DNA of 64,000 bases, taken from Vitrella brassicaformis CCMP3155 (taxonomy: Eukaryota; Protista; Chromerida). Position numbers and translations under genes: made by a program. Below the pieces are notes generated by a model. That model was not told the DNA's origin, searched no databases, and saw only the letters and a program-made list of their open reading frames with translations. Shown piece after piece: positions 15,341 to 53,701 of the stretch (position 1 is its first letter; each line of letters begins with the position of its first letter). The stretch spans positions 1-64,000 of the forward strand of contig CDMY01000427.1 in NCBI GenBank assembly GCA_001179505.1, written 5' to 3'.

Positions 15341-15436
15341 ACTATGATCAATCTGATCGTGTTTTGTGTTGTGCAGTCCTCGTCAGTCGAGGGTTCTCTT
15401 GATGACGGTGATGAATGTGATGCGCGATGCATACAA

Positions 15437-15612
15437 CCGCTGCCTATATTTTATATCCTGACGGTTGGTTAAGCGTTCTCTCTGCCTATCATCCGTGTAG
15501 ACCAGGTGTGCCTGCAGATCATGTCTCTGCCGGTCTCTGCCTATCTCTGCCTACATTTTATGTATATCCTGACGATCCGTTAACCGTAGCTCCCTCTCTC
15601 TTCCTCTCTGCC
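15437..15612 (+). repeat. Local amplification of the cassette motif (CGCTGCCTATATTTTATAT plus about 5 CTCTGCC(TA) sub-repeats)
   Basis: TTTTATAT at 15449-15456. A second copy CTCTGCCTACATTTTATGTATATCCTGACG lies at about 15545-15575. Confidence 0.75.
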
Positions 15613-30155: not shown

Positions 30156-31218
30156 ATAGGCAGGCAGGCAGGCAGGATGGTCAGCAGCGAGCCTGTCGGC
30201 CGATGTCATGGTATGTATGTTTTTCGTGTCTCGCTGTTCGGCTTTTTACTTTTTTCTCGGTGTTTTTCCTTTCCTTTCCTTCTTGCCTCCTTTCTCTCCA
30301 TGTGTGTGTCCATGTGTGTGTAATGGTGAATCCCCCTTGTAGAGCCCTGTGTGTGGGGGTATCACTCACCCACTGTGTGTGTGCGTGTCTGTCGTCGGCT
30401 GGCTACTGCCGGGCGGCACTTCGGACAAGGACAGGCAGGCCAGCCATTTATGTGTCCGTAAGCTCTTAGGGGTCGTGCTGCCTGTGTGCATGATAATTAA
30501 CCATGTCTGCGCGCGCGTGTCGATGCGACGATTCTGCATTGTGATGGATGGATGGATGGATGGACGGATGGGTGATAATTGAAGGCTGTGATGGTGAACG
30601 TGAGTGAGACATGCACCAGAGACATCAGCTCCATCCATCCATCCATCTATCCGCCCATCGTCCACGAGAGCATACCGGTGGCTTCCCGCTGTCACAGTGT
30701 TGTGTGTGGGTATTGTTGACACCTTGATTGGATGCAATTGGCTTTCATTCGATGTGCAGGCAACACGACACGGAAAGAATGTGGTACGCTGGAACAGTAA
30801 GAGCAGCCAGAAGGGACGCCGGCATTGCAGGGGGAGGCAAAGAAGAGAAGAGCAAAAGGCCATCGCACAATGGGGTGGGTGTGAGTCGGCTTGTCTGTCT
30901 TGGGTTCAAAAATCGAGGCATTCCAGACGGTTACAACACAACACGGAAAGAAACAACATTGTACCCGGCATGGCCAGAAGAAGACGACCAATATAAAACG
31001 TAGGCAGCAATTGAACGAACGCCCCCTCCTCCTCTTCTCCTCTTGAGGGGCATCCAAAGGAATAGGCTGGGTGGTGGATGCTTTGTGTGCGTGTGTGGCG
31101 GAGAAATGCTTAGAAAAGTCAGGCGTCGCCTCCAATGCTAAACCGTACGCACCACTCAGTACTAGATTTGTCTATCTTCCTCCCTCCCTCCTCGCTCCCC
31201 GCCTGCCGCTGACTTCCC

Positions 31219-31992
31219 TTACACCCTCCTCACGATGTATCCCTTCTTCGTCGTGCGCACACCCGCTCCCGTGTCGAGGGAGGGGTTGTGGTTGCCGGTG
31301 GTGAGCTCGTCCTCGCCCCTTGTCGGTCCCTGCCGGCACGTCAGTCGCCTTGACGCCATCACGCAGCCCTGCACAAGGCGTTGCACCACCACTGGGACTG
31401 GCCTGCTGCACCACTGGGGGCCTGGACCTGCCTCCATCACTGCCTCCAGGCGGCAGCTGACGACTCGACAGGCCGCCGCCAGACTGAGGTGTCGTGCGCT
31501 CTGATGCGGGGCTGCTGCCGCCCGACTGGCGATCTGCGCGAGGGGGGATGTGGCCACCACGGTGTGTGGGGCCGCCCGATATGTCCTTGTCGAGAGGGCC
31601 CAGGTTGATGGGTCCTGGTGGAAATGTGGGCGATGCGCCGTTGGACACCTTTGTGCAGGGGGACGAGGGCTGCTGGTTCCCATGCCGCTCCATGGCGTGG
31701 GGTCACTGCTCCCACCGGGGCTGGGCAGCGGGCTGGTCTGCCGCACCACTGGGGCGAAGCCGAGCGACGGGACGGCGTTGGCGGGCATTGATGTCTCGTC
31801 TTCACTGGCCTCGCCATACTGGTGCTCTGCTGCGGCAGACTGGGTGAGATGGGGAGGAGGCAGATCGCGTGTGGGGGCGGACGAGAGGGGAGGGGCGACG
31901 GGGACGTCCTCGCGCGACATGGGACGGGATGCGCCACCTCCACATCCGCACCGACAGTAGGTGGCATCGGTCGGCTCGGCCCGCCGACCCAC
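31219..31992 (-). pseudogene. Inverted, rearranged copy of the 9140-9410 module (SSAPTRDLPP...EHQYGEASEDET.MPANAVPS.GFAPV..QTS.LPSP...TPCAGLRDGVKATD)
   Basis: High nucleotide and peptide similarity to 9140-9410. An insertion splits the module and the second half is in another frame. Confidence 0.8.
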
Positions 31993-32442
31993 GTCCTACC
32001 CCGGCCGCGGAAGTAGGTCTCGGGTGATAGTCTTCAGGACATCAGACGTGTAGTTCTTGTAGGGATCATAGCTGACAGAGAAGTCGCAGCAGAGGGCGGA
32101 CACGTGTATGGGCGTGTGGTGACGTCCCTCCCTCCCTCCCTCCCTACCTCGTCACGGGAATGAAGTGTGAAACATAGCGCCCGATAGCGTGGCACCCGAA
32201 CAGCACGTAGTCCTGACCACCCACACCATCAGGCGCACTCATCTGTATAACCTCCCTCCATCCATTTCCCCCCTATGTGCTTTGCGCGGCTACATACCTC
32301 GTGGAACAGAACGGGAAATTCCATGTCGTTTGGGCCCATTCAAACTTGACTCCGTACTGATTGATGCATTCATGCCGACACACAAGAACACGCATCCATG
32401 TGTGACTGCATAAGTGTGTATGTGTGTGTGTGACGTGTGTAC

Positions 32443-32543
32443 CTTTTGGTAGATGGCGAAGGCCTCCTCGAACAGCTGGTACTGCAATTGCGGTACTGCT
32501 CGTCCTCATTGTTCAAGTCGACGAACTCCTCCGCCGGGTCTGA
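32443..32543 (-). pseudogene. Decayed clathrin heavy chain fragment
   Basis: SDPAEEFVDLNNED (frameshift) QYQLFEEAFAIYQK resembles CHC (SDPSRVMEYINRLDNYD...EYxLFEEAFxIYKK, recalled). Ends at donor AAG|GTACAC. Confidence 0.55.
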
Positions 32544-34284
32544 AGTTTGTATGGTGCGGATACGGTTGTGGTCACTGCCGTCGACATATAAAATGTAGGA
32601 GGCGATGCAGACAGGCGACTGAAGTGAGGAGGGAAGTGACAGAGACACGACACTATACGAGAAGAGCAGTGTATGTGTGTGCGTATACCTCTGCCTCTCC
32701 TTCTCCCTCTTCAAGTCCCTCTCCTTGGCCCGCACGTGGCGCGGCACATACACCCCCGTCGGACCACCAGCACCAGCACTGGTCGGCGAGTCCTTGCCTG
32801 TCGCCGATGTGGCGGGCTTGGCCGGGCCTGCTATTGACACCTCAGGGGCGATGGAGTGGGCGAGGGGGCGGGTGACCGGGTTCGTCGTCTCAGGGGCAGC
32901 AAACGGCTGGGACGTCACACCATTCGCATCGGCAGGAGACCCAGACACTTGCGGCCTCTCACAGGCGGCAAGCAGCAGGCCAGGGGGGCGATGGCGATGG
33001 CGATGGCGATGGCTGGGGCGAGGGGTCATCCGTCTTGGCCTCCTTGGCTTCATTCAGCCGCTGCTGCGACTTCTTGGGAGGGGTCTCGTGAGCGCAGACG
33101 GGCTTGCCAAGACCCTTGGCCGATGTGGTGGTGTTTCGTCCGGTGAGTTAGAATTGCCCTTGCCGACGAGCGATATGGTGGCCCTCTTGCCCTTGGGGGG
33201 ACGGCTGGTCTTGGCCGCTCCTCGCTGGTACAGCTCTCTCCGATGTCGGGCTTGGCCCTCCCACCCCTCTCCCTCTCCTCATCCCTCACGCTAGAAGTAG
33301 ATTTCTTCTGCACCTTCGGCTGCTGCTGCTGCGGCTGGGCCTCAGCACCGTGACGGTATTTGGTCGCCATATCAATGGTCGGTTGAATTCTGCTGAGGCA
33401 TCGTCACTTAGAAGTTAGAACCAAGGGAAGGGACAGTCCATCTCGTCGGACGACAACGTCGGTTCGTCGGGGGCTCGCACCAAATGGGGGCCACGCGATC
33501 GCCTGAAACCAAGCCCGCAAGCGATTCAATGGATGTTCAGTGTGATGTTTGGTGGCCCTTCTGTACCTGGATGAGGCCGTCCATCGGTCATCGTGACGTC
33601 TGCAATGCTCCACACACGCCCAGACAAACATCCTTGGGTTTCTCTCTTCTGCTTTTTGTTTTCTGTGGCAAAGGCCCGCACCCCCCGTGGCTTGCTTACG
33701 TCGGACAGAGATAGGATGACATTGGTGTGCGGACATCCGATTGGCCACTTGCGACAAAATATAAAATGGAGGCAGCGATGGATTGGCTGCAGTGAACAGA
33801 CACACACAGAGGGGAATGTGTGTTAATGAGAACTGACAAGGCGGTCATTTCTTACCTCATCTCACCGAGACACAGCCCGTTGCCTGATAGCTGACTTTAG
33901 GCGAGTGAGACACGACAATCCTTCCATGAGGATGTCGACGTGTATGTGTGCGTCGGTGTAGGTCCCTGGGTGTGTGACGCCTGGGACTTTTGTTGCGGCA
34001 TCGTCGACGACTCAGAAGCAGCGGTCAGGGAAGTACATCATGCTGTTGGGGGGGTGGGGGGGTTCAGGCCTTGACGCTAGTGGCAACGAATGAGCGAACA
34101 GACGAATGAGCGAGCACCCGCCCTCCCTCGGGATGGTAGTGGTGGGGTGGCCCTTGCTCCATCTCACGGTTCATCCCCGCCGGCACAGGGGACTAGCGTG
34201 GCGATGGCGACGGCGGCAACTGATGCTGACAAGTGGCGTTGTAGCTGGTGTACTGCTGCTGATGATGCTGCTGGTGTTGGTGTT

Positions 34285-34900
34285 GGTGTTGGTGCCGCTG
34301 GATGGGTGGCGAGGGGATGAACTGTTCGTGAGGGCCGGAAAAGGGGCTGAGTGGCTGGAAGAAGGGCCCCCGTCCTCCTCTGAACGCCGTCATGTCCACC
34401 ACCGGCTGCACGAACGCGTTGCGAGTGGTCTGATGGGAGGGGGGAGGGGGGAGTGGAGGGGCGCGTGAGGGAGGGGGGGGAGGCTGCCACGCGCTGTCAC
34501 GCCGACCTTGTCCGGCCTGACAGGACACACAGACACCACGGGATGAGCGAAATGCGTCCTCCTGACCCCATGGATGGCCGAGAGGCACTCCCGACCTCCC
34601 CATCGGTGCATGAGCCCTGTGCGTGCGGTGTGCACCCCCTCACCATCGGGTGAGAGCCATGCGGCAGCTGTGCAGCATCTGAGCGAGGTCCCTGACCTCC
34701 GTGGGAATGCATCGGTCAATTCGTTGGGGGCTCGCACCAAATGGGGGCCACGCAATCCACCTAACCAAGCCGCAAGCGATTCAGTTGATGTTAAGTGGGA
34801 TGGTTCGTGGCCCTTCTGTACCTGAATCCATCGGTCCTCGTGACCTCTGCAATGCTCCACACGCTTTAGCAGACAGCCACAAACTTTGTGTGGTGCGGTT
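34285..34900. repeat. Segmental duplication, copy 1 (partner at about 42490-43450)
   Basis: Near-identical runs such as TGGTGCCGCTGGATGGGTGGCGAGGGGATGAACTG...CCTGACAGGACACACAGACACCACGGGATGAGCGAAATGCG...GCATCGGTCAATTCGTTGGGGGCTCGCACCA. Confidence 0.85.
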
Positions 34901-35437
34901 GTGATTGTGGTCACTTTCTGTCGACATATAAAACGTAGGCGGCGATGCAGATAGGCGACTGAAATGAGAGAGACACATAGAGACACGAAAGTGAATAAGA
35001 GGAGCAAGGTTTGTGTGTGTGTGTGTGTGCCCCTCCTGTTTTCGTGTGTGCTCACCTGCAAGCGCCTGTGTGGAGAAAGGGCAAGCGACACATGCGCTGC
35101 GACACACCATACAGGGGGGAATTGTGCACCGACGCCCTCAGACACAGCGGGACATCCCAATGACACAGCCAACAGCCGTCCAGCCCGTCAGCAGAAGAAA
35201 GTGGCCATCCATCCAGACCGACACCCACGCAGGCAGGCGGGCAGGCAGGCAGGCAGGCAGGCAGAGAGAGAGAGAGAGAGATGAAGAGAGACCGGCAGCA
35301 GACCCACACAATAGTGCCCCCCGCTCACACAAGATGCCACCCAGACGATACGGATCCCCTCAGGCAGACACACAGACACAGATGCAGATGCAGATGCATG
35401 CATGGAGCCACCCACCCCCCACGCACCCACACGTCGA

Positions 35438-37740
35438 TCATGCCCCCCATATACTGTGCCAGAGGTCCCTGCCAGCTTGGCATGTCGCCGCCCATCCCAC
35501 TTTCGCCCTCATCCACCTGTCCTGGTCTGCCGCCCTGACCGCCCACATGGCCTCTTGGGCATCCCACTCCCAGAGGTCATGGCGCTGCGGTTGCTCACTC
35601 CAGTACCAGCCCCCGTGGATGTTGTTGTGCACCACGTCGTGCACGACGGCCATCGGGGCCATCTCGGCGGGGACCAGCACCTTCGTGAAGCAACTCACCA
35701 TGTTCTCCAGGCCTGGGGCGGGCACATAGGGAGGCTCTGGGTGGCGCTGCGGGGAGGAGCTCGGTGGTGGCGGCGATGAGGGAGTCGTCGTCTGCTGCCG
35801 GTGCTGCCAGTGCTGCTGGTGCTGCTGGTGCTGAGTCATGGCCGGTGCTGCTGTGGCGCCACCGGGCACGAAGTCCTTGGCGAACGGGTTGAGCTGGTGC
35901 TCCCGGCTGGTTGCGGTGCTGGTGGCTGCCTGAGTGACTGCTACCGTGTGTGGGATGGCGGGGACGGCCTGGGGGGTCAGGGGTGAGTCCGGCAACGCAT
36001 CATAGGACGCTGGGGACCCACCAGGCGACCCTGACCCCGTCTCGGCACCAGAGTCGTCGCCTGAACCAGACAGACAGACAGACAGATCAATGAAGTGAGA
36101 TACCATCCATCACCATGCTAGATGCCTTCCTCTGGTGTGTATTTCTTTGCCCACCCTCAGTCTGCACTCTCTTGAGAGCCGGCGATGCCGCCGCACTGCA
36201 GGAGTAGGGGATGCCGGACTCCACAGCCTGGCGCACAGCTGCCGACTCCAGCAGCTCCAGCCCTCTAAACAGCCGCTCCTCCATCTCTCGCAGCGACGCC
36301 CTCTCCCTCTGCTTGGTTCGCAGCCCCCCTGCTGCCGTGGCCCCCAACAGGTCCACCCAGCTCTTCGTCCACTCCACGCCGGGCGTGGCGAAGAAGGCGG
36401 CGAGTGGGCATGTGGGATGCCCATGGTGGAGGGGGTGGTGGGTGTGGCCGTCGATGAGCTTGGGCATGTGCTCCTCCCACTGCAGGGCCATCTGCTGCTC
36501 CCTCCTCAGCTTGACGTGCTGCCACTCTGCACCCGTAGGAGGGACGGGGAGCCCCGCCATGATGGTTTCGAAGACGGGGCGGCCTCGGAGGGCGGCAAGG
36601 TAGCTCATGCCGACTCCCCACGAGAGGCTCGGCTCACCGACGAGCACGGCCTCCTCCTTGCCTCTCCCCGTCAGCATGCCCTCCGACCGCAACTCCTTGC
36701 GCTGCTCCTGCCACCCCGCGAAGATGGCGTCGGTCGTCGGGTCGCCACTGGTCGACGCGGCGTCTTGGTCGGCATCCTCGTCCTCCTCATCATCCGGCCC
36801 CATCATCACCACGAAGTGCTCGGGCGACATGTACCAGTTGGTCCCCTCCGGTGGCGCCTCCTGTGCCTCGGTGTCGAGGGGAATGCGAGCGGCTCTCGGG
36901 CCCAGAAAGGCGGGGTGTGCGTATGGGCGGGGCGACGGGGGCGCTGCGTGGGCCTTGGCGAGGTCGATCATGACGGTGCCGTTGACGGAGGGGTGGCGCT
37001 CCAGGGTGTGGTCTCGGCCGCGGAGGGCCTCCCAGGGCAGCATGATGTTGTTGACAAACCCATCCAGGCAGTACACGCCGTTCAGACGCGCAAGCCCGGT
37101 GGGCCTGTGTGGCCAGGACGAGGGCCTTCTGGATGACCTTGACGGCATCCAGCACCTTGGTCCACGCCTCTCTGGTGTTGCTGCCCTGCAGAAAATCCCT
37201 CACGACCGCCACGAGGTTGTACTTGAGCCGCTCCTGCCTCTCCTTCTTCGTCCACCCCAACAAGACCGACAGCTCGACGTAGACCTCATCTGCACGCACG
37301 AACAGCACACACAGCCACACACACAAAGGTGTTCGTGCTCTGATGGTCCTTCCTGTCCCTTCTCCCCAACACATGCAGTGACACTCTCAGAATCTGCCCT
37401 CTTATCGCTCACCGAGCAGCGGCGGCATGGCTATGCACAGGATGTCTACAGTGCTGCCGTCAGGGCGGGCGGTGTCGGCCGCGAGCAGTCGCAGAAAGGG
37501 GGGCCGGCCTCGCCGCTCCTGCATCCGCCTCACCTCAGCCTCCATCTCGCTCCTCGCCCTCGTCTTCTCTGCCGCCGTCAGCCCCCCCAGCTCCCTTGTC
37601 TTGATGGCTACATCGTCGGTGTCCTCTGGGGGGCTGTAATGTCGTCGCGGCAGCCTCCCTCTCAGCGTGGCGCTCCTCTCGTTATCAAATGTGACGGTAC
37701 GGCCGTCGATCCACTTGAGCTGTGACGCAGACATGCTCAT
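35438..37740 (-). pseudogene. Divergent protein kinase with C-terminal PAM2 motif and Trp-rich tail; one frameshift at about 37080-37095
   Basis: Kinase motifs in order: DVAIK, EAEVRRMQ, GVYCLDGFVNNIML, MIDLAKA, GTNWYMSPE, SWGVGMSYLAALRGRPVF and ERASLREM. The last exon contains LNPFAKDFVP (35864-35893). Exons join in frame except at the frameshift. Confidence 0.72.
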
Positions 37741-38579
37741 CTCCTCTTGCTAGTTTGATCTCCTGCCGGCAGCCGTCCCACTCTTCTGCGGCTGTGGGAG
37801 TGGCTGCATACTTGCAGCAGCATCTGAGCCAGTACGTGACGAGCTCTTGTTCACGGATCTGAGAGCCGCACCCTGATGGAATGAAGAGACACGTGTGCTT
37901 GCTTCTTTCTTTGTTTGTATGTTTGTTTGTTTGTTGGCGTGGTGTGCGTACCCGACAGGGTGGAATCGTGAGGACCGATTCTCGCCACAAGACCACCAAA
38001 CACCTCCGCCGCCCCATATCCGAAACCCGTGATAAGAGGGACGCTCAAATATAAAATGTAAGCAGCAATTGAGGCGCCTGACAATGAGAGAGAGAGAGAG
38101 AGAGAGGGAGACGTGATAGAGAATGACGTATGTCCTCATTGTGTGCTCACGCTCGAGCCGCCTCTTCGCCTCTCTTCCGCGCGAGGACGACCCTTCTGCA
38201 TCTTGGCTGCTCCGCATCCTCGCCAATCTGAGCAGGTGGCTCGGTCTCACTCGCCGCGGCAGCCTCACCCTCGTCCTTGCCCTCAGTCTCTTGTGGCGAG
38301 TCTACTGTGTGTGGTGGATTCACGTGGGTTCTTGTGTGGTGTCTTCACGTGGGTTTTTACATCGGCCGCATCGACAAGGCGTTGCTCCTGCTCCTCGTCG
38401 TGATCTGAGTGCACCCACACAAGGCAGACCGAGAGACGGACAATGAGATGAGATGCATCATTGTGTGGCAGGCCCGCCCACCGTATGTATCTCTCCTACC
38501 GCGGTAGTCTCCTCCTGCCGGGGCCCGTGCTGTGTCGTGTCGCGTGCTGTGTCGTGATGGTATGGATGGTACAGCACAG

Positions 38580-39375
38580 CGGCTCTCTAGCTGTCTGTCT
38601 GTATGTTTGTGTATGTGTGTATGATCAATCGACATATATGACATCCATCCATCCATCCATTCATCCATCCATCCGGACAGACAGACAGACAGACAGACAG
38701 ACACACAGACAGACAGACAGACACACAGACAGACAGACACACAGACAGACACCAGGGAGGCAGACAGACGGACACAGCACACACCACACCACACCACACC
38801 CCACTACACAGTGATGTTGGGCGCCCCAACCCAATGAACCCTACACCCACACAGAAATAAAAATGTACAGAAACGCACGACACCTACGTACAGACACCCA
38901 CCCCTCTCCCTTCCCCCCTGCCCCCTCGCCCCCATCCCCCGTGCCACAGCATCGAGCCATCAGCACCGAACCCCTCCCGCGGATCCCCGCTGTGTGTAAA
39001 CGGGTATGCAGACATCCATGTGTGTGTCGGTCGTGTGCGTGTGACCAAGACAAGACGCCTCCATTGTGCCCATCTACAACTGACGCACACCCTCCCAGCG
39101 TGAGGCCGTGTCGGACTTACAGCGGCTCTGTCTGTATGTCTGTGTGCGTATGATCAATCGATATGACATCCATCCATCCATCCATCCAGACAGACAGACA
39201 GGCAGGCAGGAGGGCGGACAGACAGACAGACAGACGGACAAACCACACACCACAACCACTACACACTCATGCCCAAAAAAAAAAAACAGATGCCCGAAAC
39301 CCCATGGACCCTACACCCACACAAAAAGAGAAATGTAGGAAATGCACGACACCCACGCACAGACACCGTCCCCTC

Positions 39376-39410
<35 letters not shown>

Positions 39411-39412
39411 CC
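38580..39412. repeat. Tandem duplication of a ~350-500 bp microsatellite-rich intronic block
   Basis: 38581-38940 and 39121-39412 share TATGATCAATCGA..ATGACATCCATCC...ACCCTACACCCACACA...AATGTA..AAA.GCACGACACC. A related block occurs inverted at about 12960-13030. Confidence 0.75.
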
Positions 39413-39712
39413 NNNNNNNNNNNNNNNNNNNNNNNNNNNNNNNNNNNNNNNNNNNNNNNNNNNNNNNNNNNNNNNNNNNNNNNNNNNNNNNNNNNNNNNN
39501 NNNNNNNNNNNNNNNNNNNNNNNNNNNNNNNNNNNNNNNNNNNNNNNNNNNNNNNNNNNNNNNNNNNNNNNNNNNNNNNNNNNNNNNNNNNNNNNNNNNN
39601 NNNNNNNNNNNNNNNNNNNNNNNNNNNNNNNNNNNNNNNNNNNNNNNNNNNNNNNNNNNNNNNNNNNNNNNNNNNNNNNNNNNNNNNNNNNNNNNNNNNN
39701 NNNNNNNNNNNN
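39413..39712. other. Assembly gap (300 N) after a poly-C run
   Basis: Read directly. Confidence 0.99.
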
Positions 39713-39731
39713 CCATCCCCTTCCAGCAAGT

Positions 39732-42700
39732 TCACGATTGCCATGGCCACTTCCATGGCCACGTAAAGCACCAGCAGCAGCGGCGATCCTTCGGGGTCTG
39801 GACCTGGACCTGCTGCCTCTGCTGTGTGCCGGAGGCCGTCCCCGCTCGGCGAGCCCGCCACTGCCTCCGCTGCTCCTCCGCCACCTCGTCACACAGCAGC
39901 AGGTCCATCAGGTCGTCCCCCCCGTCGCGGCGAGTGGTGGGAACCTGATTGATGCATTCACCGAAAGGAAACACCGAGTACATGCCTTCTCGATTCGGCT
40001 CGTCAGTCTCACCCACCTCTTGCTGCTGTCGGCCCGTGCCTCGCTGTCGGTCCATGAGGCCGCCATGGGGCGGACCCTCACCCTCCTCATCGCCAGCCGC
40101 GTCGCCGTCGCGCCTCATTGGGTGTCCGTGGGGCGGCGCCATCTTGGGGACGTGATGGCCGACGAACGGGGAGGACATCGTGGAATGCCGACGAACCGAA
40201 CCAACGTGGGGGTCTCTCGCTCGCACCAAATGGGGGCCACGCGATCCACTGAACCAGGCCAGCAAGCGATTCCGTGGCTCCTCTGTACCTGAGTGAGGCC
40301 ATCCATCGGTCCTCGTGACGTCTGCAATGCTCCACCAGGGCTTTGAAGGGTTGCCAACGGCCAACGCGTTGAGTGGATAATCACTTGCAGCCGATATAAA
40401 ATGCAGGCGGCGATTGAGACACCTGACGAGCAAAGACACACAGAGCACCAGCGAGACACGTCTTGGATGAATGTCTCCTCATGTCTCTCCTTCTCTCGTG
40501 CTCACTCTATAAACGCCTCTCCATCGCTGATGGGGCGGGGCGTTGCGATGGGATTGCAACACTATCAGATGGTCCACCAGATATGTCGCCTGCAGCTGGA
40601 AGAGGCCGTTCTTGTTGGTCACCCTGGACACCTCGTCCGGGGCACCGTGGAAGACTCAAACAGCCCATACTCAGCACGCGGATATCCCCCAACTGCACCA
40701 ACAACCATCATACACACACACACACACACACCCCCATCCGCCCCTCCCTCCTCTGTCATGTGTGCTGCGGCTTACTCTTGAACGAGCTCGACTCGATGGT
40801 CTTCAGCTCAAAATGCCTCTCCCGCACGGCAGACCCCACACCGTCACTCGGCTGCTGCCGGGACTCTCGGGAAGGCAATGGCGGCAGGGACTCACCAGAG
40901 CTGCTCTGATGGGACGACGCCTCGGGAGTCTGCTGGGTGACGAATCTCGACGCAGCTGCAGCGAAGCCAGCCCGGTGATGCTGCAGATAACACACACACC
41001 ACACACGCAACACACTTATGAGAGAGTTCATTGCTGCCTGTGTGCCGTGCGTCGTATTCCCACCGGCCCTCTCGCGTGACCAAACTCGCGGTTCATCCCC
41101 GCCGCCGCAGAGGCGTCGCCCTCCCCAGGTATAGTGTATGCGACGCCCTCTCTCGGCATCATGTAGGACGTCACAGGATGATAGCCACCATAGCCCGGTT
41201 GTGGCGGCAACTGCTGCGGGTGTGAGTGCGGTTGGTATTGGTGGTGCGCCGGGCTGGGGGCACCGTAGATATCTGCTGGCAGATAATGTGGCTGTGTGGC
41301 GGCAATGGCATTCAACCACGGCGGCGGGAGGGCGTCGTTGCGGGGGCCGTGCTGCAGGTGCGGTGCGCCCATGTGGGCACGAAACGCATTCATGCCTTCG
41401 GGGCGTATTCTCACGGCATAACGCGGGAATGGAGACTGGGATGAAGTTGTGTCGCGTGCACCTTGGCTGGCCGTCATGCCGCCCCGATAGAGATTCCACT
41501 GCCCCTCTCTGCCGCCGCCGTGAAAGCCGTTGAACGCACCCTGACAACAAACAGGCCATCCAACGACACACACATAAGCACATCCATGCCATGCATCAAT
41601 GACATGTCCCATGGTGTGGGGGTGGGTGCGTGTGTGCAGTTGTTCTGTGCCATACCTGTTGGTGGCGGTAGTTGTTGTATTGGTTGAAGTAGTTGCTGAA
41701 GTTCTCTGGCGACTGGCGTCCCCGGTAGCTATAAGGCGCGGCGTCGCCCTCCCGCTGCTGCTGCCCATCCCGCCAGATGCCATGACCACCAGCCTCGTGC
41801 CACTGATGCTGTTGGCCCATACTTACACCGCCGGCACCCCCTCCCTGACCCCCGGCAAGCACCGGCCCTCTCTCGGGATGGTCGCTTCCCGACTGGCGCA
41901 GGCCGATGTCCATGAGCTGCTGCGGCACGTTGGGCGGATGTCGGGTGTCCCTGCGGGGAGGGGCATCGGCGCGATTCAGAGTGCGCGGGCCGCCCTGGTC
42001 CTGCGGGTCGTAGGTGTCGTAGAACGGACGGCCTCCTCGGTGGCCACCGGGGCCGCCGTATGGCCAATCTGACAGTGAGTTCAACACACACCAACCCACA
42101 AACAACAAATTGCAAGACGGACCCACTGAATGTCCTTGTCTGTCGAGTCTGCCTCTCGTTTGTCTCCCCTACCCATGGTTCTGTTTCGGTCGCGGGCGCG
42201 TGCAGCGGCGTTGGTCTCCAACTCGGTCTCGAGGTCGGTCTGGAAGCCTGCACCCGGCATGCCGGGCGGGGCCCGATGCTGCGGCCCTGATGGAGGATTC
42301 AATGGCGCCACGGGCGGCGCGGGACGGCCGCCACGGTACGGCTGTCGGTCCCAGCGGCTGTCGTTGCGCTGGTTGCAGTAGCTGTCGGGGTTGGTGGCGT
42401 AGGCGGGTCGGATATTGGTGGGAGGAGGGTGGGGGGAGGGAGTCGGGCCGGTGGGTGAGCGTTCGTACGCCGGCTGGATGATCTGGCGTTGGTGTTGGTG
42501 CCGCTGGATGGGTGGCGAGGGGATGAACTGTCCGTGAGGGCCGGAAAAGGGGCTGAGTGGCTGGAAGAAGGGCCCCCCTTCTCCTCTGAACGCCGTGGAG
42601 CCCATCGGCGGCTGCCCAAACCCGTTGAGAATGGTCTGGTGGTGGGAGGGGGGATGGGGGAGTGGAGGGGCGGGGGGGGGGGGGGGGGGGGGGNNNNNNN

Positions 42701-42993
42701 NNNNNNNNNNNNNNNNNNNNNNNNNNNNNNNNNNNNNNNNNNNNNNNNNNNNNNNNNNNNNNNNNNNNNNNNNNNNNNNNNNNNNNNNNNNNNNNNNNNN
42801 NNNNNNNNNNNNNNNNNNNNNNNNNNNNNNNNNNNNNNNNNNNNNNNNNNNNNNNNNNNNNNNNNNNNNNNNNNNNNNNNNNNNNNNNNNNNNNNNNNNN
42901 NNNNNNNNNNNNNNNNNNNNNNNNNNNNNNNNNNNNNNNNNNNNNNNNNNNNNNNNNNNNNNNNNNNNNNNNNNNNNNNNNNNNNNNNNNNNN

Positions 42994-43031
<38 letters not shown>

Positions 43032-43090
43032 AGGCTGCCACGTGCCATCGCGACGACCTGTGCCGGCCTGACAGGACACACAGACACCAC
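39732..43090 (-). CDS. Low-complexity P/G/Q/N/R-rich protein or chimeric pseudogene, multi-exon, crossing a gap
   Basis: Exon-like ORFs: FQPLSPFSGPHGQFIP...RGGRPAPP; YGGPGGHRGGRPFYD...NFSNYFNQYNNYRHQQ; FHGGGREGQWNLYRGG...PGYGGYHP. These are flanked by GT/AG and CA-rich introns. No recognisable folded domain. Confidence 0.45.
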
Positions 43091-43450
43091 GGGATGAGCG
43101 AAATGCGCCCTCCTGACCCCATGGATGACCGAGAGGCACTCCCGACCTCCCCATCGGTGCATGAGCCCTGTGCGTGCGGTGTGCACCCCCTCACCATCGG
43201 GTGGGAGCCTTGAGGAAGCTGTGCAGCTCCTGAGGGAGGTCCCTGACCTCCGTTGGAATGCATCGGTCAATTCGTTGGGGGCTCGCACCATATGGGGGCC
43301 ACGAGATCGCCTGAACCAAGCCAGCAGGCGATTCAATTGATATTCACTGTGATGATTCGTGGCTCCTCTGTGCCTGAGTGAGGCCATCCATCGGTCCTCA
43401 TGACCTCTGCAATGCTCTCACACACGCCCAGCGGCCTTCAGCAGACAGCC
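42490..43450. repeat. Segmental duplication, copy 2 (partner at 34285-34900)
   Basis: See copy 1. Also 43380-43640 matches 40300-40520, and 43685-43880 matches 37960-38160. Confidence 0.85.
42694..42993. other. Assembly gap (300 N) between poly-G runs
   Basis: Read directly. Confidence 0.99.
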
Positions 43451-44139
43451 ACAGACTCAATCGACTCGGGCTTTGAAGGGTTGCCGACGGCCAACGCGTT
43501 GAGTGGATGATCACATGCAGCCGATATAAAATGCAGGCGGCGATTGAGACGCCTGACGAGCAAAGACATACAGAACACCAGCGAGACACGTCTTGGATGA
43601 ACGTCTCCTCATGTCTCTCCTTCTCTCGTGCTCACTCTGTGAACGCCTGGTGGAGTGAGTACCCGACTGGCATGCCGACTGGGTGGAATCGTGAGGACCG
43701 ATTCTCGCCACAAGACCACCAAACACCTCCGCCGCCCCATATCCGAAACCCGTGATAAGAGGGACGTTCAAATATAAAATGTAAGCAGCAATTGAGGCGC
43801 CTGACAACGAGAGAGAGAGAGAGAGTCAGATGTGATGGAGAATGACGTATGTCCTCATTATGTGCTCACGCTCAAGAAGCCTCTTCGCCTGTCTTCCTCG
43901 CTGCTGCTGGGAAGGGGCGGGAAGGGCGGGTGGGGACGCAGATGGGGGGACGGTGGATGTCGCATTGTTGGTGGCGTTGTTGGTGTCGTCGACCATATTG
44001 TACACCCTTCCTCTGTTGTCATCCCGCCCCTCAACGACGACGCCGTTGGCTGACGAAAGCAAAAAAGTAACGAAAGCAAAGAAGTAGCCAGATGCATGTG
44101 AGTACTGCATGGCGTCTGCTTTGCCTACTCATCACTTAC

Positions 44140-45560
44140 CAATCAACGCCTGCATCTCCGTCGTCAGGTCGCGCAGGCTCACCAAGTGGTAGACCTCCCC
44201 CTCTGCCCGCATGAGCTTGCCAAGTGCATCGGCGAGCTCGAAAAGGCCGAGGCCGTGTCCCCGAGAAAGCGAGGAAACGATCGCTTCCCTCAGGGACATG
44301 GCCTCGACCTGTCCAGGTGGTGCTGGCCTCCCTGGGCCCTCGCCCCCCTTGTGGCGATCCCTGATAGCCATGCATACAGAAGTGCCATGGTGGGTCACAC
44401 CCACTTGGACAAGCCTTCTGTCACCTGTCGCCGGTGCTGTCCCTTTTGGTTGGCGCACGCGATGAGCTCGACGGCACCGAGGGCGGCTTCGTCCCTGCGG
44501 AGCCTGCACAGAAACCACACAGAAACATAGAATGCGACGACCTGGTCATTCATAAGTCGCGTGTGTCTGTGAGGTGCCCGTGAGGGTGCTTGGGTGTGTT
44601 GGTATACAGACTTGACGAGGACGCCGCGCCACTTGAGGAGCTGCCACCGAGCTGGTTGGCCCTGATAGCCATTCACGTGTTAAGGTGAGCCACGCATCTT
44701 ATTCCTATCTGTCTTACCTCAGGAAGAGGTTGAGCAGCCTCTGCAGGAACTCCAGGCGAATGTCGTCTGGGAGCTCCGTCAGGTACTGCTCGTCCGCCCC
44801 AGCAAAGGACAGCACCTCCCTCTCTGAGACGCCCAGCGATCAAGCAATGGCGCTGAGCAGGTCCGACTGGAACGGCAAGGGCTCGTCCAGGTAGGCATCA
44901 TCCTCACCCTCTCCGCCGGCAGGACTCTCTTCGGCGGCTTCCTGACTCTCGGCGGGGGGCTGCGACTGCTCCTCTCCCTGCTGTGGTGCTTCTTGGTGGC
45001 GGCTGGTCGCGCTGCTCTGACGCGGAAGACGGCGACTGAGATGCAGGTGCTGCTGGTGGTGGTGGTGCTGGTGCTGGTGGTGGGCGCGGTACCGTCACGT
45101 CGGGTGGCGCAAAGGGTGGAGGCGCCGCAGAAGCGTCCTGTTGGGCCTCGCCTTCGCCCGTTGACCTCCCTGCCTGGCCGACAGCAGTGGGGCTGTGTTG
45201 GACAAAGTTGAGATCCAGCCGCACCTGTGGGGGCTGCTCCTGCGGCACCGGGCCAGGCGAGGGAGGAGCTGCCGACTGCATCGATAATGTCAGGGAGGCG
45301 ACGAGGCTGTCGAAGAGGTGCTGAGTGTCTTCAAGTTGGTGGATGGGCGATGGGAGAGTGAAGGCAGGCGGCTCCTCTTCACCGGTCGGCTGGCTTGCCT
45401 CGGCCTCGCTGGGCTCCTGTTGTAACGACTGGCCCTCTCCCTCCCCCTCCCCTGTGGCCTCCTCTCTGCCTGTGACCTCCGTGTCTTCCGCAGCGGCCAC
45501 CATATCGCCCTTCTGCACCTTTGGCTGCTCCGCCTCCTCGCCAATCTGAGCACGTGGCTC
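44140..45560 (-). pseudogene. Acidic low-complexity gene relic with a UBM/DUF4414-like motif and an in-frame TGA
   Basis: ...YLDEPLPFQSDLLSAIA*SLGVSEREVLSFAGADEQYLTELPDDIRLEFLQRLL. TGA at 44840-44842. Motif resembles xDxxFLxALPxDIRxEVL. Confidence 0.45.
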
Positions 45561-46304
45561 GTCCGGTCAGCAGATTGCAGATCACCGTCCAATATAAAAT
45601 GAAGGCAGCGATTGAGGCGCCTGAAGTAATGGAAGAGACACAGACACGGCGGCGAATCATGTGCGTGTCATGTTTGTGTGTGTGTCTCTCTCTCTCTGCT
45701 CACCCTGCAAGCGCCGTGCACATTGCCTGTGGGGGTCATGGAACGGGGCGGGCGTACACACAGCAGGGGGCGATGGGGGGCATCATCTCCTGGACAAGGG
45801 TATCAGCGTACGCTGCGGTCTAGAAGTCTTCGGCGGGGTCGTTCAGCGCCCTGCACATAAAGCAGACAACAGACAACACACAGTAGCTTCAAAGGCAGCT
45901 ATGTTGTGAGGTGTGCTTGTACCTATCGAGGAAGAGACGGGCACGATCCGCCCGCTGCTGCCGCGCGACGCGCTGGCGGTTCGCCCACACCTCGGCCGCA
46001 AACTCACGGCAGACTGTTCATGCAGCACGCACAAGAGACATTTGAGATGCACCCATCTACTCACTGGCTGACGACCTTACCCTCAGCTGCTCCATCGGCG
46101 ACATGTCGCAAGATGTTCCAGAAAAGATCCGGAGCGCAGAGCTGGGCGGACCAACGCGTTTGAATGGATAATCACTTGCCACCAATATAAAATGAAGGCA
46201 GCGATGTGCTGAGGCGCCTGACAAGGGGAGAGACACAGCGAGGGAGTCGCTCACGGGCGCATTGTGTCTCTGCTTCTCGTGTGCTCACTTGAATGTGCAG
46301 GACT

Positions 46305-46860
46305 TCACAGGCCAACCAAAACAGCAGTGGTGCTCCCGTTGGCCTCCTCGGGGCCGTGGTCGTTCATCTCCAGCACTGGGGCCTCTTCCTCTCTTTCTTC
46401 TTTAGACTCCTCCTCTGTTGGTTCTTGTGCGCCCTCGCCCTCCTGTTGCTGCTCTCGCTGTGGCTGCTCTTGCTGCTCCTTGGTGGTGGGCTCTTCTGGC
46501 TGCTGTGGCTGCTCGGCAGGGATGGCCTGCTCCGGTGGCTCGATGACGGTTGCGGCTGGAGGCGCCTCCTCTGTGGTTTTGGGCTGCTGCTCTCCTTCCT
46601 TCTCCTCAGCCTCATGCCGACGCGGTTGGATGGATGGACACAAACAAAGGAATGGATGGACACCCATATATGGGTGTGGGTGTGGGTGTTGGTGGGTGTT
46701 GGTGGGTGTTGGTGGGTGTTGGTGGGTGTTGATGTGTCGGATTGGATGGATGGATGGTTTAACCACCTACCTGTAGTCTGTGCAGGTTGGGGCGGAACTC
46801 CAGCCACATCTGGGGAGGCCATCTCCTCAAGACCACTCACAAAACTCTCAAACAGCGCCT
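46305..46860 (-). pseudogene. Glu/Gln/Pro-rich module exon related to 14140-14210
   Basis: EQQQEGEGAQEPTEEESKEE versus QQQEGEGEGAQEPTEEEPKEG. Confidence 0.55.
46682..46731. repeat. 10-bp minisatellite (GGTGGGTGTT) x5
   Basis: Read directly; the first unit is slightly imperfect. Confidence 0.85.
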
Positions 46861-48501
46861 AATTGCGGTACACGAGGCAAGAGAGACATGAGGACACAAT
46901 GTTATATCATCCGTTCCTCCCCATCCCTCTCACTCGGCTTCTCGGTCACGTTTGTCGAGCTCGGCCTGCATGACGGACACACACAAAGGGGGACGACACG
47001 TACATCACATGAATGAGATGAGTGGGCGCTTCGTTCGTGGTAGACACATACCAGCTGCTGTTGGGTGCAGTATCTGTAGAATCCCTTGCCGGCCTCGCTC
47101 TTGTGTCTGCACGGATGAAAATGCTCGGGCGTTGCACTTGGTGTCGCTGCAGCTTGCAGCCCGTAGATGGCCGCCGAGGCGGCCAAGAGGGCGTTGAAAA
47201 ACAGGGAAAACAGAGGAGACATGAGCAAATCCGTGCGGTATTCTCTTCCTTCTGTCTTGCTTACGTACCTGAGCGGCGTGCCGCCAGATGATAAGTAGGA
47301 CACACATCTGAAGTATGGCGCAGATCAAGGACTCATTGAACAGGATCGGTGATCATTCTTAACGTGCACGTGACGGGGGTACCGGCTCTCTCTGGTCGCG
47401 AGGCTGTGGTTGTTTTGTTGGACCAAAGCGTTGCCTTTCTGAAAGCAGCAACGAGAACACTGTTGCCAACAGCTCGACAGACGGCAGGGCACTACCAGTT
47501 GAGGCCTCCCGAGGAAGGTGACGTTCGGGCAGTCTGGGAGGGACACGATGGACCTCATAAGCCGATAAACAGCGAAATTCTCTCTACAGGACAACAGAAG
47601 GCCATAGAAGGCGAGCAGGTCAGACGATGGCTGCCTGCAGCAAGTGCTGTCAGATTACCTGGAGTCCGCTCACTTTAATGATGACTTTGCGCGGGCTCAT
47701 TGACGTCGTGCAGAAGAGGTGAATTCAGGAGTATGACAGATATAAAATGTAGGCACCGATCTGCAGGCGCACACAGAGGGGACGAGAGACATGAGTGTGC
47801 AGAGTGAGACTCGGGATCCTGCACACGGTGGGAGATGACCTTTCCTCTGTGTGTGTCCGTCACCCCTGATGTGATCGTTGCTTTCTGCCTTCTTCTCATC
47901 TCGCGGGGCGATGAGGGGGAATCTGACAGACGGCAGCAGAGGAATGCACTGTGTGTTGGCCCGAAATTATCATGTGCTCTCTCGCTCATTTGTTTCCCCT
48001 GTTGTGGTCTGCAGCATCGAGCGGCACCACGAGCATGACGGCGACACAACCTGACTGACACACCCACAAAGAGAGACAGAGAGACGCCATCACAAGTTCA
48101 TCCAAACATTGAAGGTCACGATTGGGCGCCATCGTATCGCTGTCATTTGGTGCTGTCCTGTTGCTGACTGTGTGTGAGGGGAGGACGCGCAGCATCCACA
48201 GAAGCCAGAGCCCCGAAGACGTTAAACGAGCACAGCGGTCTGCAGACACAAGATCGGAGAGACACCATCGTGCAAAGTTAGATGTATCGTGAGGCTTCCT
48301 CAAAGTACTTCGCAGCGCAGCGCAGCGCATCGGTCGATTTGGCGTAAAGAATCCGCCGAATATAAAGCGTAGGCAGCGATTCTGAACAAAACCAGACATG
48401 CACACACAGTTTCCATGTGACTTGTTCGAAGGCGGGCTGACCTCGTCAGAGTTGGACGTAATGATTGATGACGTGTGGGTATTTGCCTGAGACCAAATAC
48501 A

Positions 48502-48720
48502 CACACAAGTACGACGAGAAATCCCGAACGTGAGCGACTTTCCATTCTTTAATTAATGAATAGCTGAGCCAAACATGAAGGTCTCGGCGACCTTGGGGCT
48601 CTCCGTTGTCGGTGTCTTTTGGCCGCCGGGCGGGCTGAGCTCGTCGAGGATGACCTGGCAGTAGTCGACTTGGATGTCATGGGGTTGGGTGCTGATCACG
48701 TGGACGTATCTCCCTGCGAC

Positions 48721-48751
<31 letters not shown>

Positions 48752-48815
48752 GTAAGACGAAAAATCCCGAATGTGAGCGACTTTCCATCCCTTCTTAAAT
48801 TAATGAATACGTACC
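48502..48815. repeat. ~65-bp dispersed direct repeat (CACACACAAGTA.GACGA.AAATCCCGAA.GTGAGCGACTTTCCAT...AATTAATGAATA) x2
   Basis: Copies at about 48502-48565 and 48743-48810 flank a minus-strand exon-like ORF. Confidence 0.8.
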
Positions 48816-49289
48816 TGCTCCATTCATGAAGTTCTCGAGCTGAAACTGCGCGGTGGCCTCCGCCAACATATGAAACAGCTCCTGCCGCACACACACATCA
48901 CCATCAAGGAAGGGAATGGATGCAATCAGGAATGCATCTGTCTGTCTGATGTCGAGGAATGAACCGTCCCTTGTGTGGCTATTCTGCCCCTGGCCTGCAT
49001 GCATGGCCTCCCTCGATGCCTGCCTGCCCCTCCCTCACCTCATCCATCGTGTTGTGTCGCGTCGTGCTGTTCACCTGTGGCTCGGGTCTGGTGACCAACT
49101 GCAATAATCCTGGCCCAACTGCAATAGGATATGGTCCACGTGTCGATGTACGCATCAAGGTCACCGAAGCCTTGAGCTGTCCGGTCTGATATACACACAC
49201 AAGACAGAGACCGACATACACATTCATTGATGGTCGTTTTCCTCATGCAGCCAAGCTGCGAGGAGACATGTGCTCCTCTGTCTTACTTC

Positions 49290-50585
49290 AGCGGGTGCGA
49301 TGCATACGAATTGGACCGGCGTGGGAGTGTGTATGAGAGTCTCACAGATATAAAACGTAGGCAGCGATCTGTCTGCAGACACAGAACAGGAGAGACACAG
49401 CAGATTGTCTATTGGCCTCGCAGTGATCTCTCTGTGAACTGACCGAAACTACAGACAGAGAGGCAGACACATCGCTCCCCTCCACAGCAGCTCTCACTTA
49501 CCACCTGAGAAAGAAGGCTAGTGATCTCGACCCCGTTTGCCTCTTGACCGTTCCCCGCTCCCCTCCTGCTGCTGCTGCTGTTGAGCACCTGTCTCCCTGC
49601 AGGGCTGAGAGAATGGCACGGGCCGCCCAACGGGCCCCGCTCCCCCCGTTGCGGCGCGTCAGTCGACTTGACGCCATCACGCAGCCCTGAACACGGCGTG
49701 GGGTCACTGCTCCCACCGGGGCTGGGCAGCGGGCTGGTCTGCTGCACCACTGGGGCAAAGGTGAGCGACGGGAGGGCGTTGGCGGGCATGGGGGTCTCGT
49801 CTTCACTGGCCTCGCCGAACTCGGTGAGACGGAGAGGGGGCGGGACTGCACGAAAGACATCACAGATTAGACCAAAGACAAAAGGCACACAGATACATAC
49901 AGTAGGTCCGTCCATCTATCAGCCACGTGTGAGCCTGTGCATGTGTGTGTGAGACGTGAGGCAGAATGTACCGGCCTGGAACACCGTGGGCATGTCACGG
50001 GCAACATACCAGAGGATGCAGGCAGTCGACCCTAAAATAGATGCCATCCCATGCCATGAAAACTCACATGATTGGACAACTCGCCTGACGTCTCTCACAT
50101 GCGTACCCTTCAGCTGCCATTCGGGGATGTGGAGGCGAACTTCAGCGTCGTTGAACCGCACCCATGACAACGCACCGTTCACCACCGACTTGACGTCGCT
50201 GCACACACCACACAGACAGACAGACAGACAGACAGACATGTGCTCTGTGGATGCTCGCCCTGATGGTGTGTGAGTGTCAGTGTGTCGGGTGCTCACGCAA
50301 AGCAGTGCCCACTCGACAGACTGCCGCGCTGGTGGGTGACGGCGTACAGGTCGTACTCGCGGCGGATCGTCGGGCCCCCGAACCTGACACACACAGATGC
50401 ACACATATGGGCGAGTCTCTCTCTCTTGTTCTGCCACGTCCCCTCCCCGACCGACATAATACGTACCCTGCAGCTGTCCCTCAGGCTTGTTGTCCGGCAA
50501 AAACTTTGAGGTGAACTGGTCGTCGAAACGCACCCACGACTCGATGCCACCAACCATAATCTTGACCCAGCTGCACACGCACACA

Positions 50586-51753: not shown

Positions 51754-52510
51754 ATGGCTGCCGCCGCAGAAGAAGCCATGCAGAGATTGCGTGCGAAATC
51801 CGCGCACTTCTCTTTTTCGTCGGTTTGGTGGGACAAAGGTCTGACGTCTGAGATGCGCCTGTGTGGGTGCAGAGGTTCTTCATTTGACATCTAGTGGATC
51901 TTCAGCGAGGCAAAGTGTCACCGTCTCCTGAAATTCGCGAATGACTCCTACCTGCACGCATCGCGCACGGCCAGCATTTTGCCTGTGCTCCGTATGGCGG
52001 GTGAGGAGTGTGACACTATGCCGCTCACCATTGTCAATGACAACAGCAACACTGCCGGGGAGAGAGGCTGAACGAAGGAGCGTATTCGCTCATGCTCTCA
52101 GGCTTTCTCTCCGGGGGCTACTGTGGGCCGGATCGCAAGCATGTCGTTCGGAATCATGTCATTGCAACTTGAATGCATGCACGCTCATTTGTTGTCTGCT
52201 AACTCTACACCCATTCAACCCCTTTCCCCCCATTACACAGTCACAGCGGTGTGCAAAGATACAGATGGAAAAAAAAGAGTACATGGCACGCGAACTCATG
52301 CGGCGTCTCTGCTGCCTGTACACCCATCCCAACACATCTTGCTCTCGACATGCCGCAAAAACTCCTGAACGTCCTGCCACTGAACGTCTCGACACAGTGC
52401 AAGATGTCCAGGAGCTCAACCAGCGTATCGAGGACAAGACAGCGACTCATCCAGCCACCCCACCCCACCCCATCGCCCACCCATGTCTTAACTCCCCCCG
52501 TCCTTGTTGA
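51754..52510 (+). CDS. Possible small multi-exon hypothetical protein
   Basis: Exon-like segments MAAAAEEAMQRLRAK..., CHRLLKFANDSYLHAS... and QRCAKIQMEKKEYMARELMRRLCCLY. Splice phases not resolved. Confidence 0.3.
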
Positions 52511-53701
52511 TACCGATAACCTCGCACAGCAGGTGGTTCCACGGCCGCAGCGCGCGGAACGTGTCCACGGCGGCCTCCGCCAGCGCACTCGAGGAGTAGA
52601 AATCTATGTCCTTGCCCTCCACCTTGGTGCCCACGTGGAAGGACTTGAGCTGCAACAGCCTGACCGACGGGTGGTTCTTAGCGTAGCCCTTGGGCGCCGT
52701 CTTCAACCGGTCACAGCCCGCCAGTGGATCATCGCCTGCGCAATATGTGTCGACACAATCAGCAGCCAGCATTGTTCGTGAATGGTTCTGCTGCGCGTGT
52801 CGTGTGGCTGACTGACCGAATGTCTGCTTGAACGATGCGTCGTTTGTGACGGCTCCGATCTGCTTGTCGCCTCCGTCGTCGATGAACTTGCGGATGGTGT
52901 CGAGGTGGGTGGTCGACGGGCACCACATGCCGCCGCCAAACATGCTCTCGCCACTCGGATCAACACACACGTAGTACCCTGACACACCACCACACCACAG
53001 AGCACCACACCAAGAGCACACACACATGAGAATGCCTTCCTGTGCACAGATGGGTCATATGCCGGGTGCTCACCCGGTGAGGGTGTTTTCTTGTCCCCGG
53101 CGTACGATAGGAAGGCCGACATGGACGTCTTGTACGGCCGCTGGTCGGGGGTGAAACGCAAATCACCTGCATCAGGGAGGGACACACACGTGGGTGATTC
53201 TCGCACATCCATCGAACCTTCATTGTGTATGTTGTATCGTGCGTACGGTTCATCTTGAAGATGCAGTTTTTGGGGTCGAGGTCCTTGAGTGCCGGGTCGA
53301 ACTCCGCCACCTGGGCGATGATGCCCTTGACAAACTCCTGGAAATCGGCTCTCGCAGCGTCGTAGTGCTTCTTGTTGGACTTGACCCAGTCGCTACTGTT
53401 GTTGCTCGCCTGATGGGGGGATGCAACCAACGCACACAGCAGGGACACAGCACAAAACACATCCATCCATTGCTCGCCCTCCTCTCTTTGTTTCCCATGC
53501 ATCCTCGCCCACCAAATCATGCAGAAACGCTACAGTGGTCTCGTGCAGGCACGGCAGGCCACCGCCATCGCCAGCGGCAGCAGCGGCGGCAGCGCTATCG
53601 TCGGCTCTGGCTGGGCCGCTGGAGGTGCGGCAGGCCTTGAGCTGACGCACCTCATCGCCGAAGAACACGCCTCCGTATGGGGTGCCCTTCCTCTTAGACA
53701 T
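52488..53701 (-). CDS. DUF2461 (TIGR02453-like) family protein
   Basis: TVAFLHDL|ASNNSSDWVKSNKKHYD...IFKMNR|DLRFTPDQRPYKT...GYYVCVDPSGESMFGGGMWCP...LDTIRKFID...LKTAPKGYAKNHPSVRLLQLKSF. Confidence 0.88.

Follow-up and report, generated by a model that had tools for sequence, protein, structure and literature searches.

A sharply bounded 21-nucleotide motif of Vitrella brassicaformis that looks like an undescribed gene-end or gene-boundary signal

The window analysed in the current study, a stretch of 64 kilobases (kb) from Vitrella brassicaformis CCMP3155 (positions 1 – 64,000 of the forward strand of contig CDMY01000427.1, assembly GCA_001179505.1), carries 13 minus-strand copies of a motif of 21 nucleotides (nt). 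It has the appearance of a gene-end or gene-boundary signal of an undescribed kind rather than of a mobile element or a coding segment. It is non-coding and sharp-edged, and lies behind a gene whose strand it shares; the gene after it can be on either strand. The reading favoured here, tentatively, takes the motif for a gene-end signal of the upstream gene that is under selection and locked in orientation, situated in the 3' untranslated region (UTR) or termination region of about 5% of genes.

An earlier, sequence-only reading of the window had reported 13 copies of the motif in one orientation, and all of them were recovered with its pattern at the same coordinates, each with no more than one mismatch (0 expected from 100 dinucleotide-preserving shuffles). 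Neighbouring copies are separated by 248 to 3,130 nt. The motif had been thought absent from ordinary gene blocks, but two plus-strand copies with 2 mismatches lie at nt 15437 and 15544, behind a large gene at 7.6 – 15.3 kb. Nor is it special to this tract. With up to 1 mismatch allowed, a scan of the genome (72,700,666 bases in 1,064 contigs) gave 1,023 copies (512 forward and 511 reverse), and a reversed-motif control gave 1; with up to 3 mismatches the counts were 1,508 and 35. There are some 1,500 copies for the 22,817 genes of V. brassicaformis (PMC4501334), and only about 5% of the genes carry the motif. The average density is about one site per 50 – 70 kb, but the copies are clustered, and several other contigs hold runs like the 13 copies in 18 kb seen here. 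Among the loci that were read, neighbouring copies not more than 5 kb apart were on the same strand in 49 cases and on opposite strands in none. The carriers are mostly genes without a Pfam domain, and include a divergent kinase-like family with tryptophan-rich tails, of which CEM11872.1 in the window is a member. A scan of JGI metagenome contigs returned three matches on unrelated contigs (two with 34% and one with 51% G+C), which is consistent with chance, and the motif was not described in the literature searched on chromerid trans-splicing, start-site or polyadenylation (poly(A)) motifs, introners, or the sequence itself. Motif copies are often flanked on both sides by tetranucleotide microsatellites (GGAT/CATC and CAGA/GTCT repeats), for example at loci L007, L043 and L044.

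The shared part was defined from 119 distinct copies, taken from the window and 70 other loci (L001 – L070) out of the approximately 1,500. It consists of an A followed by a 20-nt core (ATYGBYGCCTNCRTTTTATAT), to which a weak tail (YYG-N3-GTCTC) is attached. Each position from -1 to +19 carries about 2 bits of information, and those from -2 upstream carry essentially none, with nothing conserved there even among tandem copies. The A at -1 is present in 116 of the 119 copies and the T at core position 0 in 118, and position 1 is C in 97 and T in 22. Past +19 the tail runs out to +32 as Y, Y, G, three free letters and GTCTC(T)T, with GTCTC exactly at +26 in 21 of the 119; the exact string CRTTTTATAT-N6-GTCTC occurs 80 times genome-wide. 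Variable core positions are limited to 1 (C/T), 3, 4 (T/C), 9 (any base) and 11 (A/G), position 3 being C, with T or G there in 146 further copies. As variation is limited to about five positions, selection or constraint is indicated rather than the random decay of pasted copies. The nucleotide-level constraint proposed from the sequence alone was borne out. The few variable positions are spread over all three codon phases. No relevant Rfam match was found, the 8 copies that were folded share no RNA fold, and folding z-scores were near 0 or above in 7 of these 8, the exception being nt 37995 – 38095 at -3.07. The motif is not palindromic. The word GTCTC or GTGTCTC, which appears 6 nt after the motif, also recurs some 15 – 30 nt before 3' splice sites (e.g. 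nt 37895 – 37880), and may be a lineage-specific branch-site or splicing signal.

The same alignment bears on whether the motif is a short exon encoding a conserved peptide such as RCLHFI, as had been suggested. All three sense frames of the core consensus are open, the fourfold free position 9 would be the third base of a leucine codon in the proposed frame, and the copy at nt 15437, when translated by hand, is entered in that frame and directly followed by a stop. Against this, the 119 copies display no preferred reading frame and no stop codon at a fixed place, variation falls on first and second codon positions but not on the remaining third positions, and the sequence just upstream of motif-adjacent introns scores as non-coding. 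A coding peptide is therefore regarded as extremely improbable. A mini-exon in general was also rejected, because splice donors are not enriched just downstream of the motif (16 of 119 copies against 18 – 35 in controls).

Coding potential around the motif, and the coding strand, were assessed with a small in-house codon model built from 13 long open reading frames (ORFs) of motif loci. Coding potential is close to nil between about -150 and +300, giving some 450 nt of non-coding sequence, and the G+C content falls to 0.50 – 0.54 just past the motif. The first downstream ATG opens a median of 20 codons, compared with 35 in controls. The strand of the flanking genes is more telling. When the best-scoring ORF within 1.3 kb on either side was considered, upstream ORFs were sense in 34 cases and antisense in none, while downstream ORFs were sense in 23 and antisense in 13 (Fisher p = 6.8e-5). 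The difference persists when only one copy per homology cluster is counted (24/0 upstream against 13/11 downstream, sense/antisense; p = 2.2e-4). Several of the antisense downstream neighbours, which include an Nramp C-terminus, a DUF4442 protein and a RING finger protein, are real convergent genes with their 3' ends facing the motif. Sense coding ORFs end 23 – 280 nt before the motif at many loci; at L044, for instance, a sense stop codon lies 96 nt upstream. This asymmetry, with the upstream gene always in the sense direction and the downstream gene mixed, indicates that the motif belongs with the end of the upstream gene, since a 5' element would give the reverse asymmetry.

Several observations nevertheless weigh against a gene-end signal, and many of them would suit instead a 5' leader or start-site element of the downstream gene, i.e. 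an initiator or 5'-UTR control sequence at, or just after, the point where transcription or the mature messenger RNA (mRNA) begins. Such an element would have the very sharp 5' edge and the invariant A at -1 that are seen here. In head-to-tail arrays the motif is about equally near the next start and the previous stop (median ~414 versus ~314 nt). An ATG at +24 is enriched, in 12 of the 119 copies versus 2.8 per position, partly due to paralogs. In some paralog pairs homology begins 1 – 5 or 35 – 45 nt before the core and continues through the first exon and conserved intron of the downstream gene, as expected of a 5' unit. The motif or a relic of it also lies upstream of the ATG in kinase-like paralogs, namely the window gene, L004 and the complementary DNA (cDNA) contig L074; in L074, which is spliced, the relic is 17 nt before the ATG. 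Transcript look-ups for motif-adjacent genes returned none that spans an intact copy, the RNA-seq contig L074 and the JGI contigs L075 and L076 being paralogs in which the motif is not intact, so that placement in a 3' UTR and any relation to the poly(A) site are putative. In 27% of copies there is a strong 3' splice site no more than 25 nt upstream, compared with about 6% at control positions, and a plain 3'-end signal would not account for this nearby acceptor. The motif is also missing from other genes of the window, e.g. the DUF2461 gene at 52.5 – 53.5 kb, so that it is not the general poly(A) signal.

A 5' leader is itself at odds with much of the data. The best downstream ORF is antisense in 13 of 36 cases (11 of 24 when non-redundant), some of them backed by Pfam, while none of the 34 upstream ORFs is. 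Around 300 nt downstream of the motif are non-coding, and the first ATG seldom opens an ORF. A real 3' splice site is found 4 – 15 nt upstream in 27% of copies, and just upstream in 12 of the 13 in the window, and the L074 transcript reaches 107 nt further upstream than its relic. A 5' leader is the main rival to a gene-end signal, though it is considered unlikely.

The acceptors deserve separate comment. Under a relaxed rule (YAG preceded by at least 9 pyrimidines in 15), 12 of the 13 minus-strand window copies have an acceptor with its pyrimidine tract 1 – 13 nt upstream, the exception being the copy at nt 30991, so that the earlier count was reproduced. A GTRAG donor lies 46 – 133 nt farther upstream in most of these 12. 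Since the acceptor is just upstream and the sequence before the intron is non-coding, many copies appear to follow an intron within untranslated sequence. The possibility that the motif is an introner was rejected, as it is placed 1 – 15 nt beyond the acceptor, on its 3' side, rather than between the splice sites, and different families do not share conserved intron bodies.

A position directly past an acceptor is also typical of spliced-leader relics, which in dinoflagellates mark genes derived from retroposed mRNAs. The motif resembles the dinoflagellate and perkinsid leader in its length of about 21 nt, its sharp edges, its frequent position past an AG acceptor and its co-oriented tandem genes, and these groups are a related alveolate lineage; it also bears what we take to be a loose likeness to the dinoflagellate leader (GCC..ATTTT). 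A leader RNA gene, in which the motif would be followed by a donor, was not found in the genome scan: GTRAGT occurs within 8 nt of the motif end in only 8 genome copies, and as these differ from each other they do not constitute a leader RNA gene family. Unlike a leader, the motif is conserved past +20 and follows genes even before a convergent gene; the genes adjoining it keep their introns, and chromerid trans-splicing was not reported in the literature searched. A relict spliced leader is thus very improbable.

The structure of the window raises the question of recombination. Self-comparison shows that it is a mosaic of reshuffled patches, and the flanks of the copies diverge, as the sequence-only reading had held, except in the local duplicates 38049~43772 (93%) and 40394~43524 (77%), which at these identities are diverged copies rather than assembly doublets. 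In several paralog pairs homology breaks exactly at the motif edges, in either direction; besides the pairs mentioned above, in which homology covers the downstream side, some share hundreds of bases upstream and lose homology 11 – 45 nt past the core. These two-way breaks show that the motif is a joint between upstream and downstream units that evolve independently. The earlier proposal of a recombination-prone exon module therefore stands in part, for the homology edges and the mosaic, but not as a coding exon, for which no frame is preferred.

Whether the motif is the footprint of a mobile or recombining element, such as a Helitron-like or Pack-type 5' terminus, as also proposed, or an integron-like site at which site-specific recombination joins gene cassettes, was considered in this light. 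It opens with TC (or TT) after a host A, as do Helitron 5' ends (A|TC...), and has a sharp left edge, a variable 'cargo' to the right and tandem co-oriented copies. The A|TC edge is the only Helitron feature it displays, however. Copies share only about 21 – 33 nt, with no family-wide homology beyond, and there is no hairpin-CTRR, terminal inverted repeat or target-site duplication. No shared second end was seen among 10-mers within 1.2 kb downstream, microsatellites aside, and an inverted-repeat scan gave only homopolymer and N-run artefacts. Nothing is conserved upstream even in tandem copies, variation is confined to a few positions, and the strict tie to the strand of the upstream gene is not expected of insertions; no Rep or helicase was noted in the window by the earlier reading, and a genome-wide search for transposases or recombinases was not made. 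The likeness to integron attC sites lies in the presence of one conserved site behind each co-oriented unit, with cassette homology breaking at the site. The units here, unlike integron cassettes, are eukaryotic nuclear genes with introns, and the motif lacks both an imperfect palindrome and a fold common to its copies; we know of no integrase in this system. A mobile or recombination footprint is accordingly judged improbable. With no frame, fold, second terminus, terminal inverted repeat or hairpin, and only 8 donor-bearing copies, a coding exon, a Helitron or Pack-type element and a spliced-leader relic are all unsupported. There is also a low probability that the motif is a 21-nt punctuation site, of a type without a described counterpart among eukaryotic nuclear genes, either cleaved at its invariant A|T edge between co-transcribed or tandem units, to give one mRNA 3' end and the next 5' end, or used for integron-like re-joining of DNA by a site-specific recombinase, by which a chromerid would shuffle its lineage-specific gene cassettes.

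A further alternative is a DNA-level chromosomal signal unrelated to mRNA, such as a replication origin, a roadblock terminator or a protein-bound chromatin boundary. The intergenic, strand-specific position of 20 invariant base pairs without RNA structure, and the average of one site per 50 – 70 kb, would be in keeping with this. But the strong clustering (13 copies in 18 kb, with similar runs on other contigs) is at odds with origin spacing, and the exon-like context with acceptors just upstream also speaks against it, making such a signal quite improbable. The plus-strand TATAAAA was considered as a TATA-box promoter and rejected: on one side of the box, neighbouring coding sequence runs antisense to it in all 34 cases, and the A/T run is no more invariant than the 12 letters next to it. 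A stand-alone TTTTATAT as a general signal was likewise rejected, every occurrence in the 64-kb window belonging to a motif copy. As for a general polyadenylation signal, the motif does lie downstream of the stop codon on the same strand, but it is not present at most genes.

A gene-end signal restricted to a subset of genes would share several features with known 3'-end cis-elements, i.e. a poly(A) signal with its downstream element, or the histone stem-loop and the element read by the U7 small nuclear RNA. Like these, the motif is non-coding, orientation-locked and located behind a same-strand stop codon, and it is followed by a T/C- and GT-rich stretch. It differs in having 20 invariant letters, which makes it far longer than poly(A) hexamers, in being restricted to about 5% of genes, in having no stem-loop, and in frequently lying 4 – 15 nt past an acceptor. 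As a gene-end signal, the motif would close each of the 13 small minus-strand units and one plus-strand gene in the window, and its carriers would be about 1,000 – 1,500 genes, mostly lineage-specific, in head-to-tail arrays. Its action would be at the end of the gene, at the level of either the transcript or the DNA. It could be recognised by an RNA- or DNA-binding factor with sequence specificity, or by a small RNA that pairs with it; with 20 invariant letters, base pairing or a multi-module binding protein would be more plausible than an ordinary poly(A) signal. The motif would also travel with its gene during tandem duplication. As the sole conserved stretch in otherwise diverged spacers, it would be where unequal or ectopic recombination re-joined units, and such recombination would account for both the mosaic structure of the window and the 'cassette' that had been described on different gene pieces.

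The individual copies illustrate these arrangements. The first in the direction of transcription (nt 49348 – 49368, A plus 20-nt core, 0 mismatches) has an acceptor 1 – 5 nt upstream, and the second (nt 48360 – 48380, 1 mismatch) a YAG 2 nt upstream. The third (nt 47740 – 47760) has a single mismatch, a G at core position 4. At the next (nt 46185 – 46205, 0 mismatches) the order as read is a stop codon, 16 nt, an intron of about 80 nt beginning with GTGAGC, 13 nt and the motif, and at nt 45592 – 45612 (0 mismatches) an 83-nt intron ends 9 nt upstream. Two duplicated units follow: the copy at nt 43772 – 43792 (1 mismatch) belongs to a duplicate of the 38049 unit (93% over 231 nt), and that at nt 43524 – 43544 (0 mismatches) to a duplicate of the 40394 unit (77% over 368 nt), whose own motif is at nt 40394 – 40414 (0 mismatches). 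The copy at nt 38049 – 38069 (1 mismatch) has a 73-nt intron ending 9 nt upstream and the ATG of the kinase-like gene 315 nt downstream, so that this gene (nt 35441 – 37734, minus strand) has a motif copy on either side; the second (nt 34926 – 34946, 0 mismatches) is about 495 nt past its stop codon. The remaining copies are at nt 33759 – 33779 (0 mismatches), at nt 32586 – 32606 (1 mismatch), where a sense coding block ends about 30 nt upstream, and at nt 30991 – 31011 (0 mismatches). The latter is the last of the array and the sole copy without an acceptor, and a sense ORF ends 211 nt before it.

The weaker plus-strand copies (nt 15436 – 15456 and its tandem duplicate, nt 15543 – 15563; 2 mismatches each) lie about 120 and 220 nt past the last plus-strand coding block of the 7.6 – 15.3 kb gene, and 1.4 kb before the next gene. 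On hand translation of nt 15290 – 15470, the last exon of this large gene would continue through the weak motif copy in the frame proposed earlier (…NRCLYFIS), with a stop right after. Upstream of the minus-strand array is a two-exon gene of the DUF2461 family (nt 52491 – 53529, minus strand; Pfam E = 1e-21 and 1e-11), with no motif behind it.

Protein and domain searches were run on single exons or ORFs, exon joins being used solely for reading frames. Of the gene pieces named in the earlier reading, the kinase-like gene is solid (CEM11872.1, strain CCMP3155, 656 amino acids, coding exons within nt 37734 – 35441, minus strand), while a UBM piece is weak (E = 0.044), and the clathrin and USP pieces gave no Pfam match in the scanned ORFs. 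The divergent kinase-like family is lineage-specific, with only 16 relatives among 1.8 billion representative proteins, and all 8 of those looked up by name come from Vitrella. Its members, with their tryptophan-rich C-terminal tails, occur in tandem arrays at L004, L016, L019, L060, L061 and L067, and in the window (35441 – 37734).

Contig L074 (Logan ERR558152) is a spliced RNA-seq contig of a kinase-like paralog, with one 141-nt intron removed; its motif relic is decayed. It corresponds to G000:C255:199400-201018, for which the annotated product has 297 amino acids. The kinase-like sequence goes on in a second ORF of the contig, and the annotated protein may therefore be truncated. In the JGI transcript contigs L075 and L076 a kinase gene is joined to a convergent gene of the Ras family, suggesting that convergent genes in Vitrella overlap at their 3' ends or are linked by read-through.

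Two assembly gaps fall within the array, and both look like homopolymer read failures. Gap 1 (nt 39413 – 39712) is preceded by a poly-C run (nt 39366 – 39412). Gap 2 (nt 42694 – 42993) is inside a poly-G run (nt 42656 – 42693 and 42994 – 43034), and its flanks are colinear with a gap-free paralogous stretch at nt 34278 – 34885. All motif copies lie more than 500 nt from either gap, and the copy count is therefore independent of them. The 3-kb piece between the gaps is bracketed by inverted C and G runs, so that its scaffold orientation is not verifiable.

Chromerids are free-living algal relatives of the malaria and Toxoplasma parasites, and to our knowledge little has been established about how their genes start, end and are co-regulated. 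If the favoured reading is true, a near-invariant 20-letter signal on lineage-specific tandem genes would constitute a new class of gene-end or gene-boundary signal. Alternatively, the motif could mark a large set of co-regulated genes, or the joint at which the new genes of this lineage are assembled.

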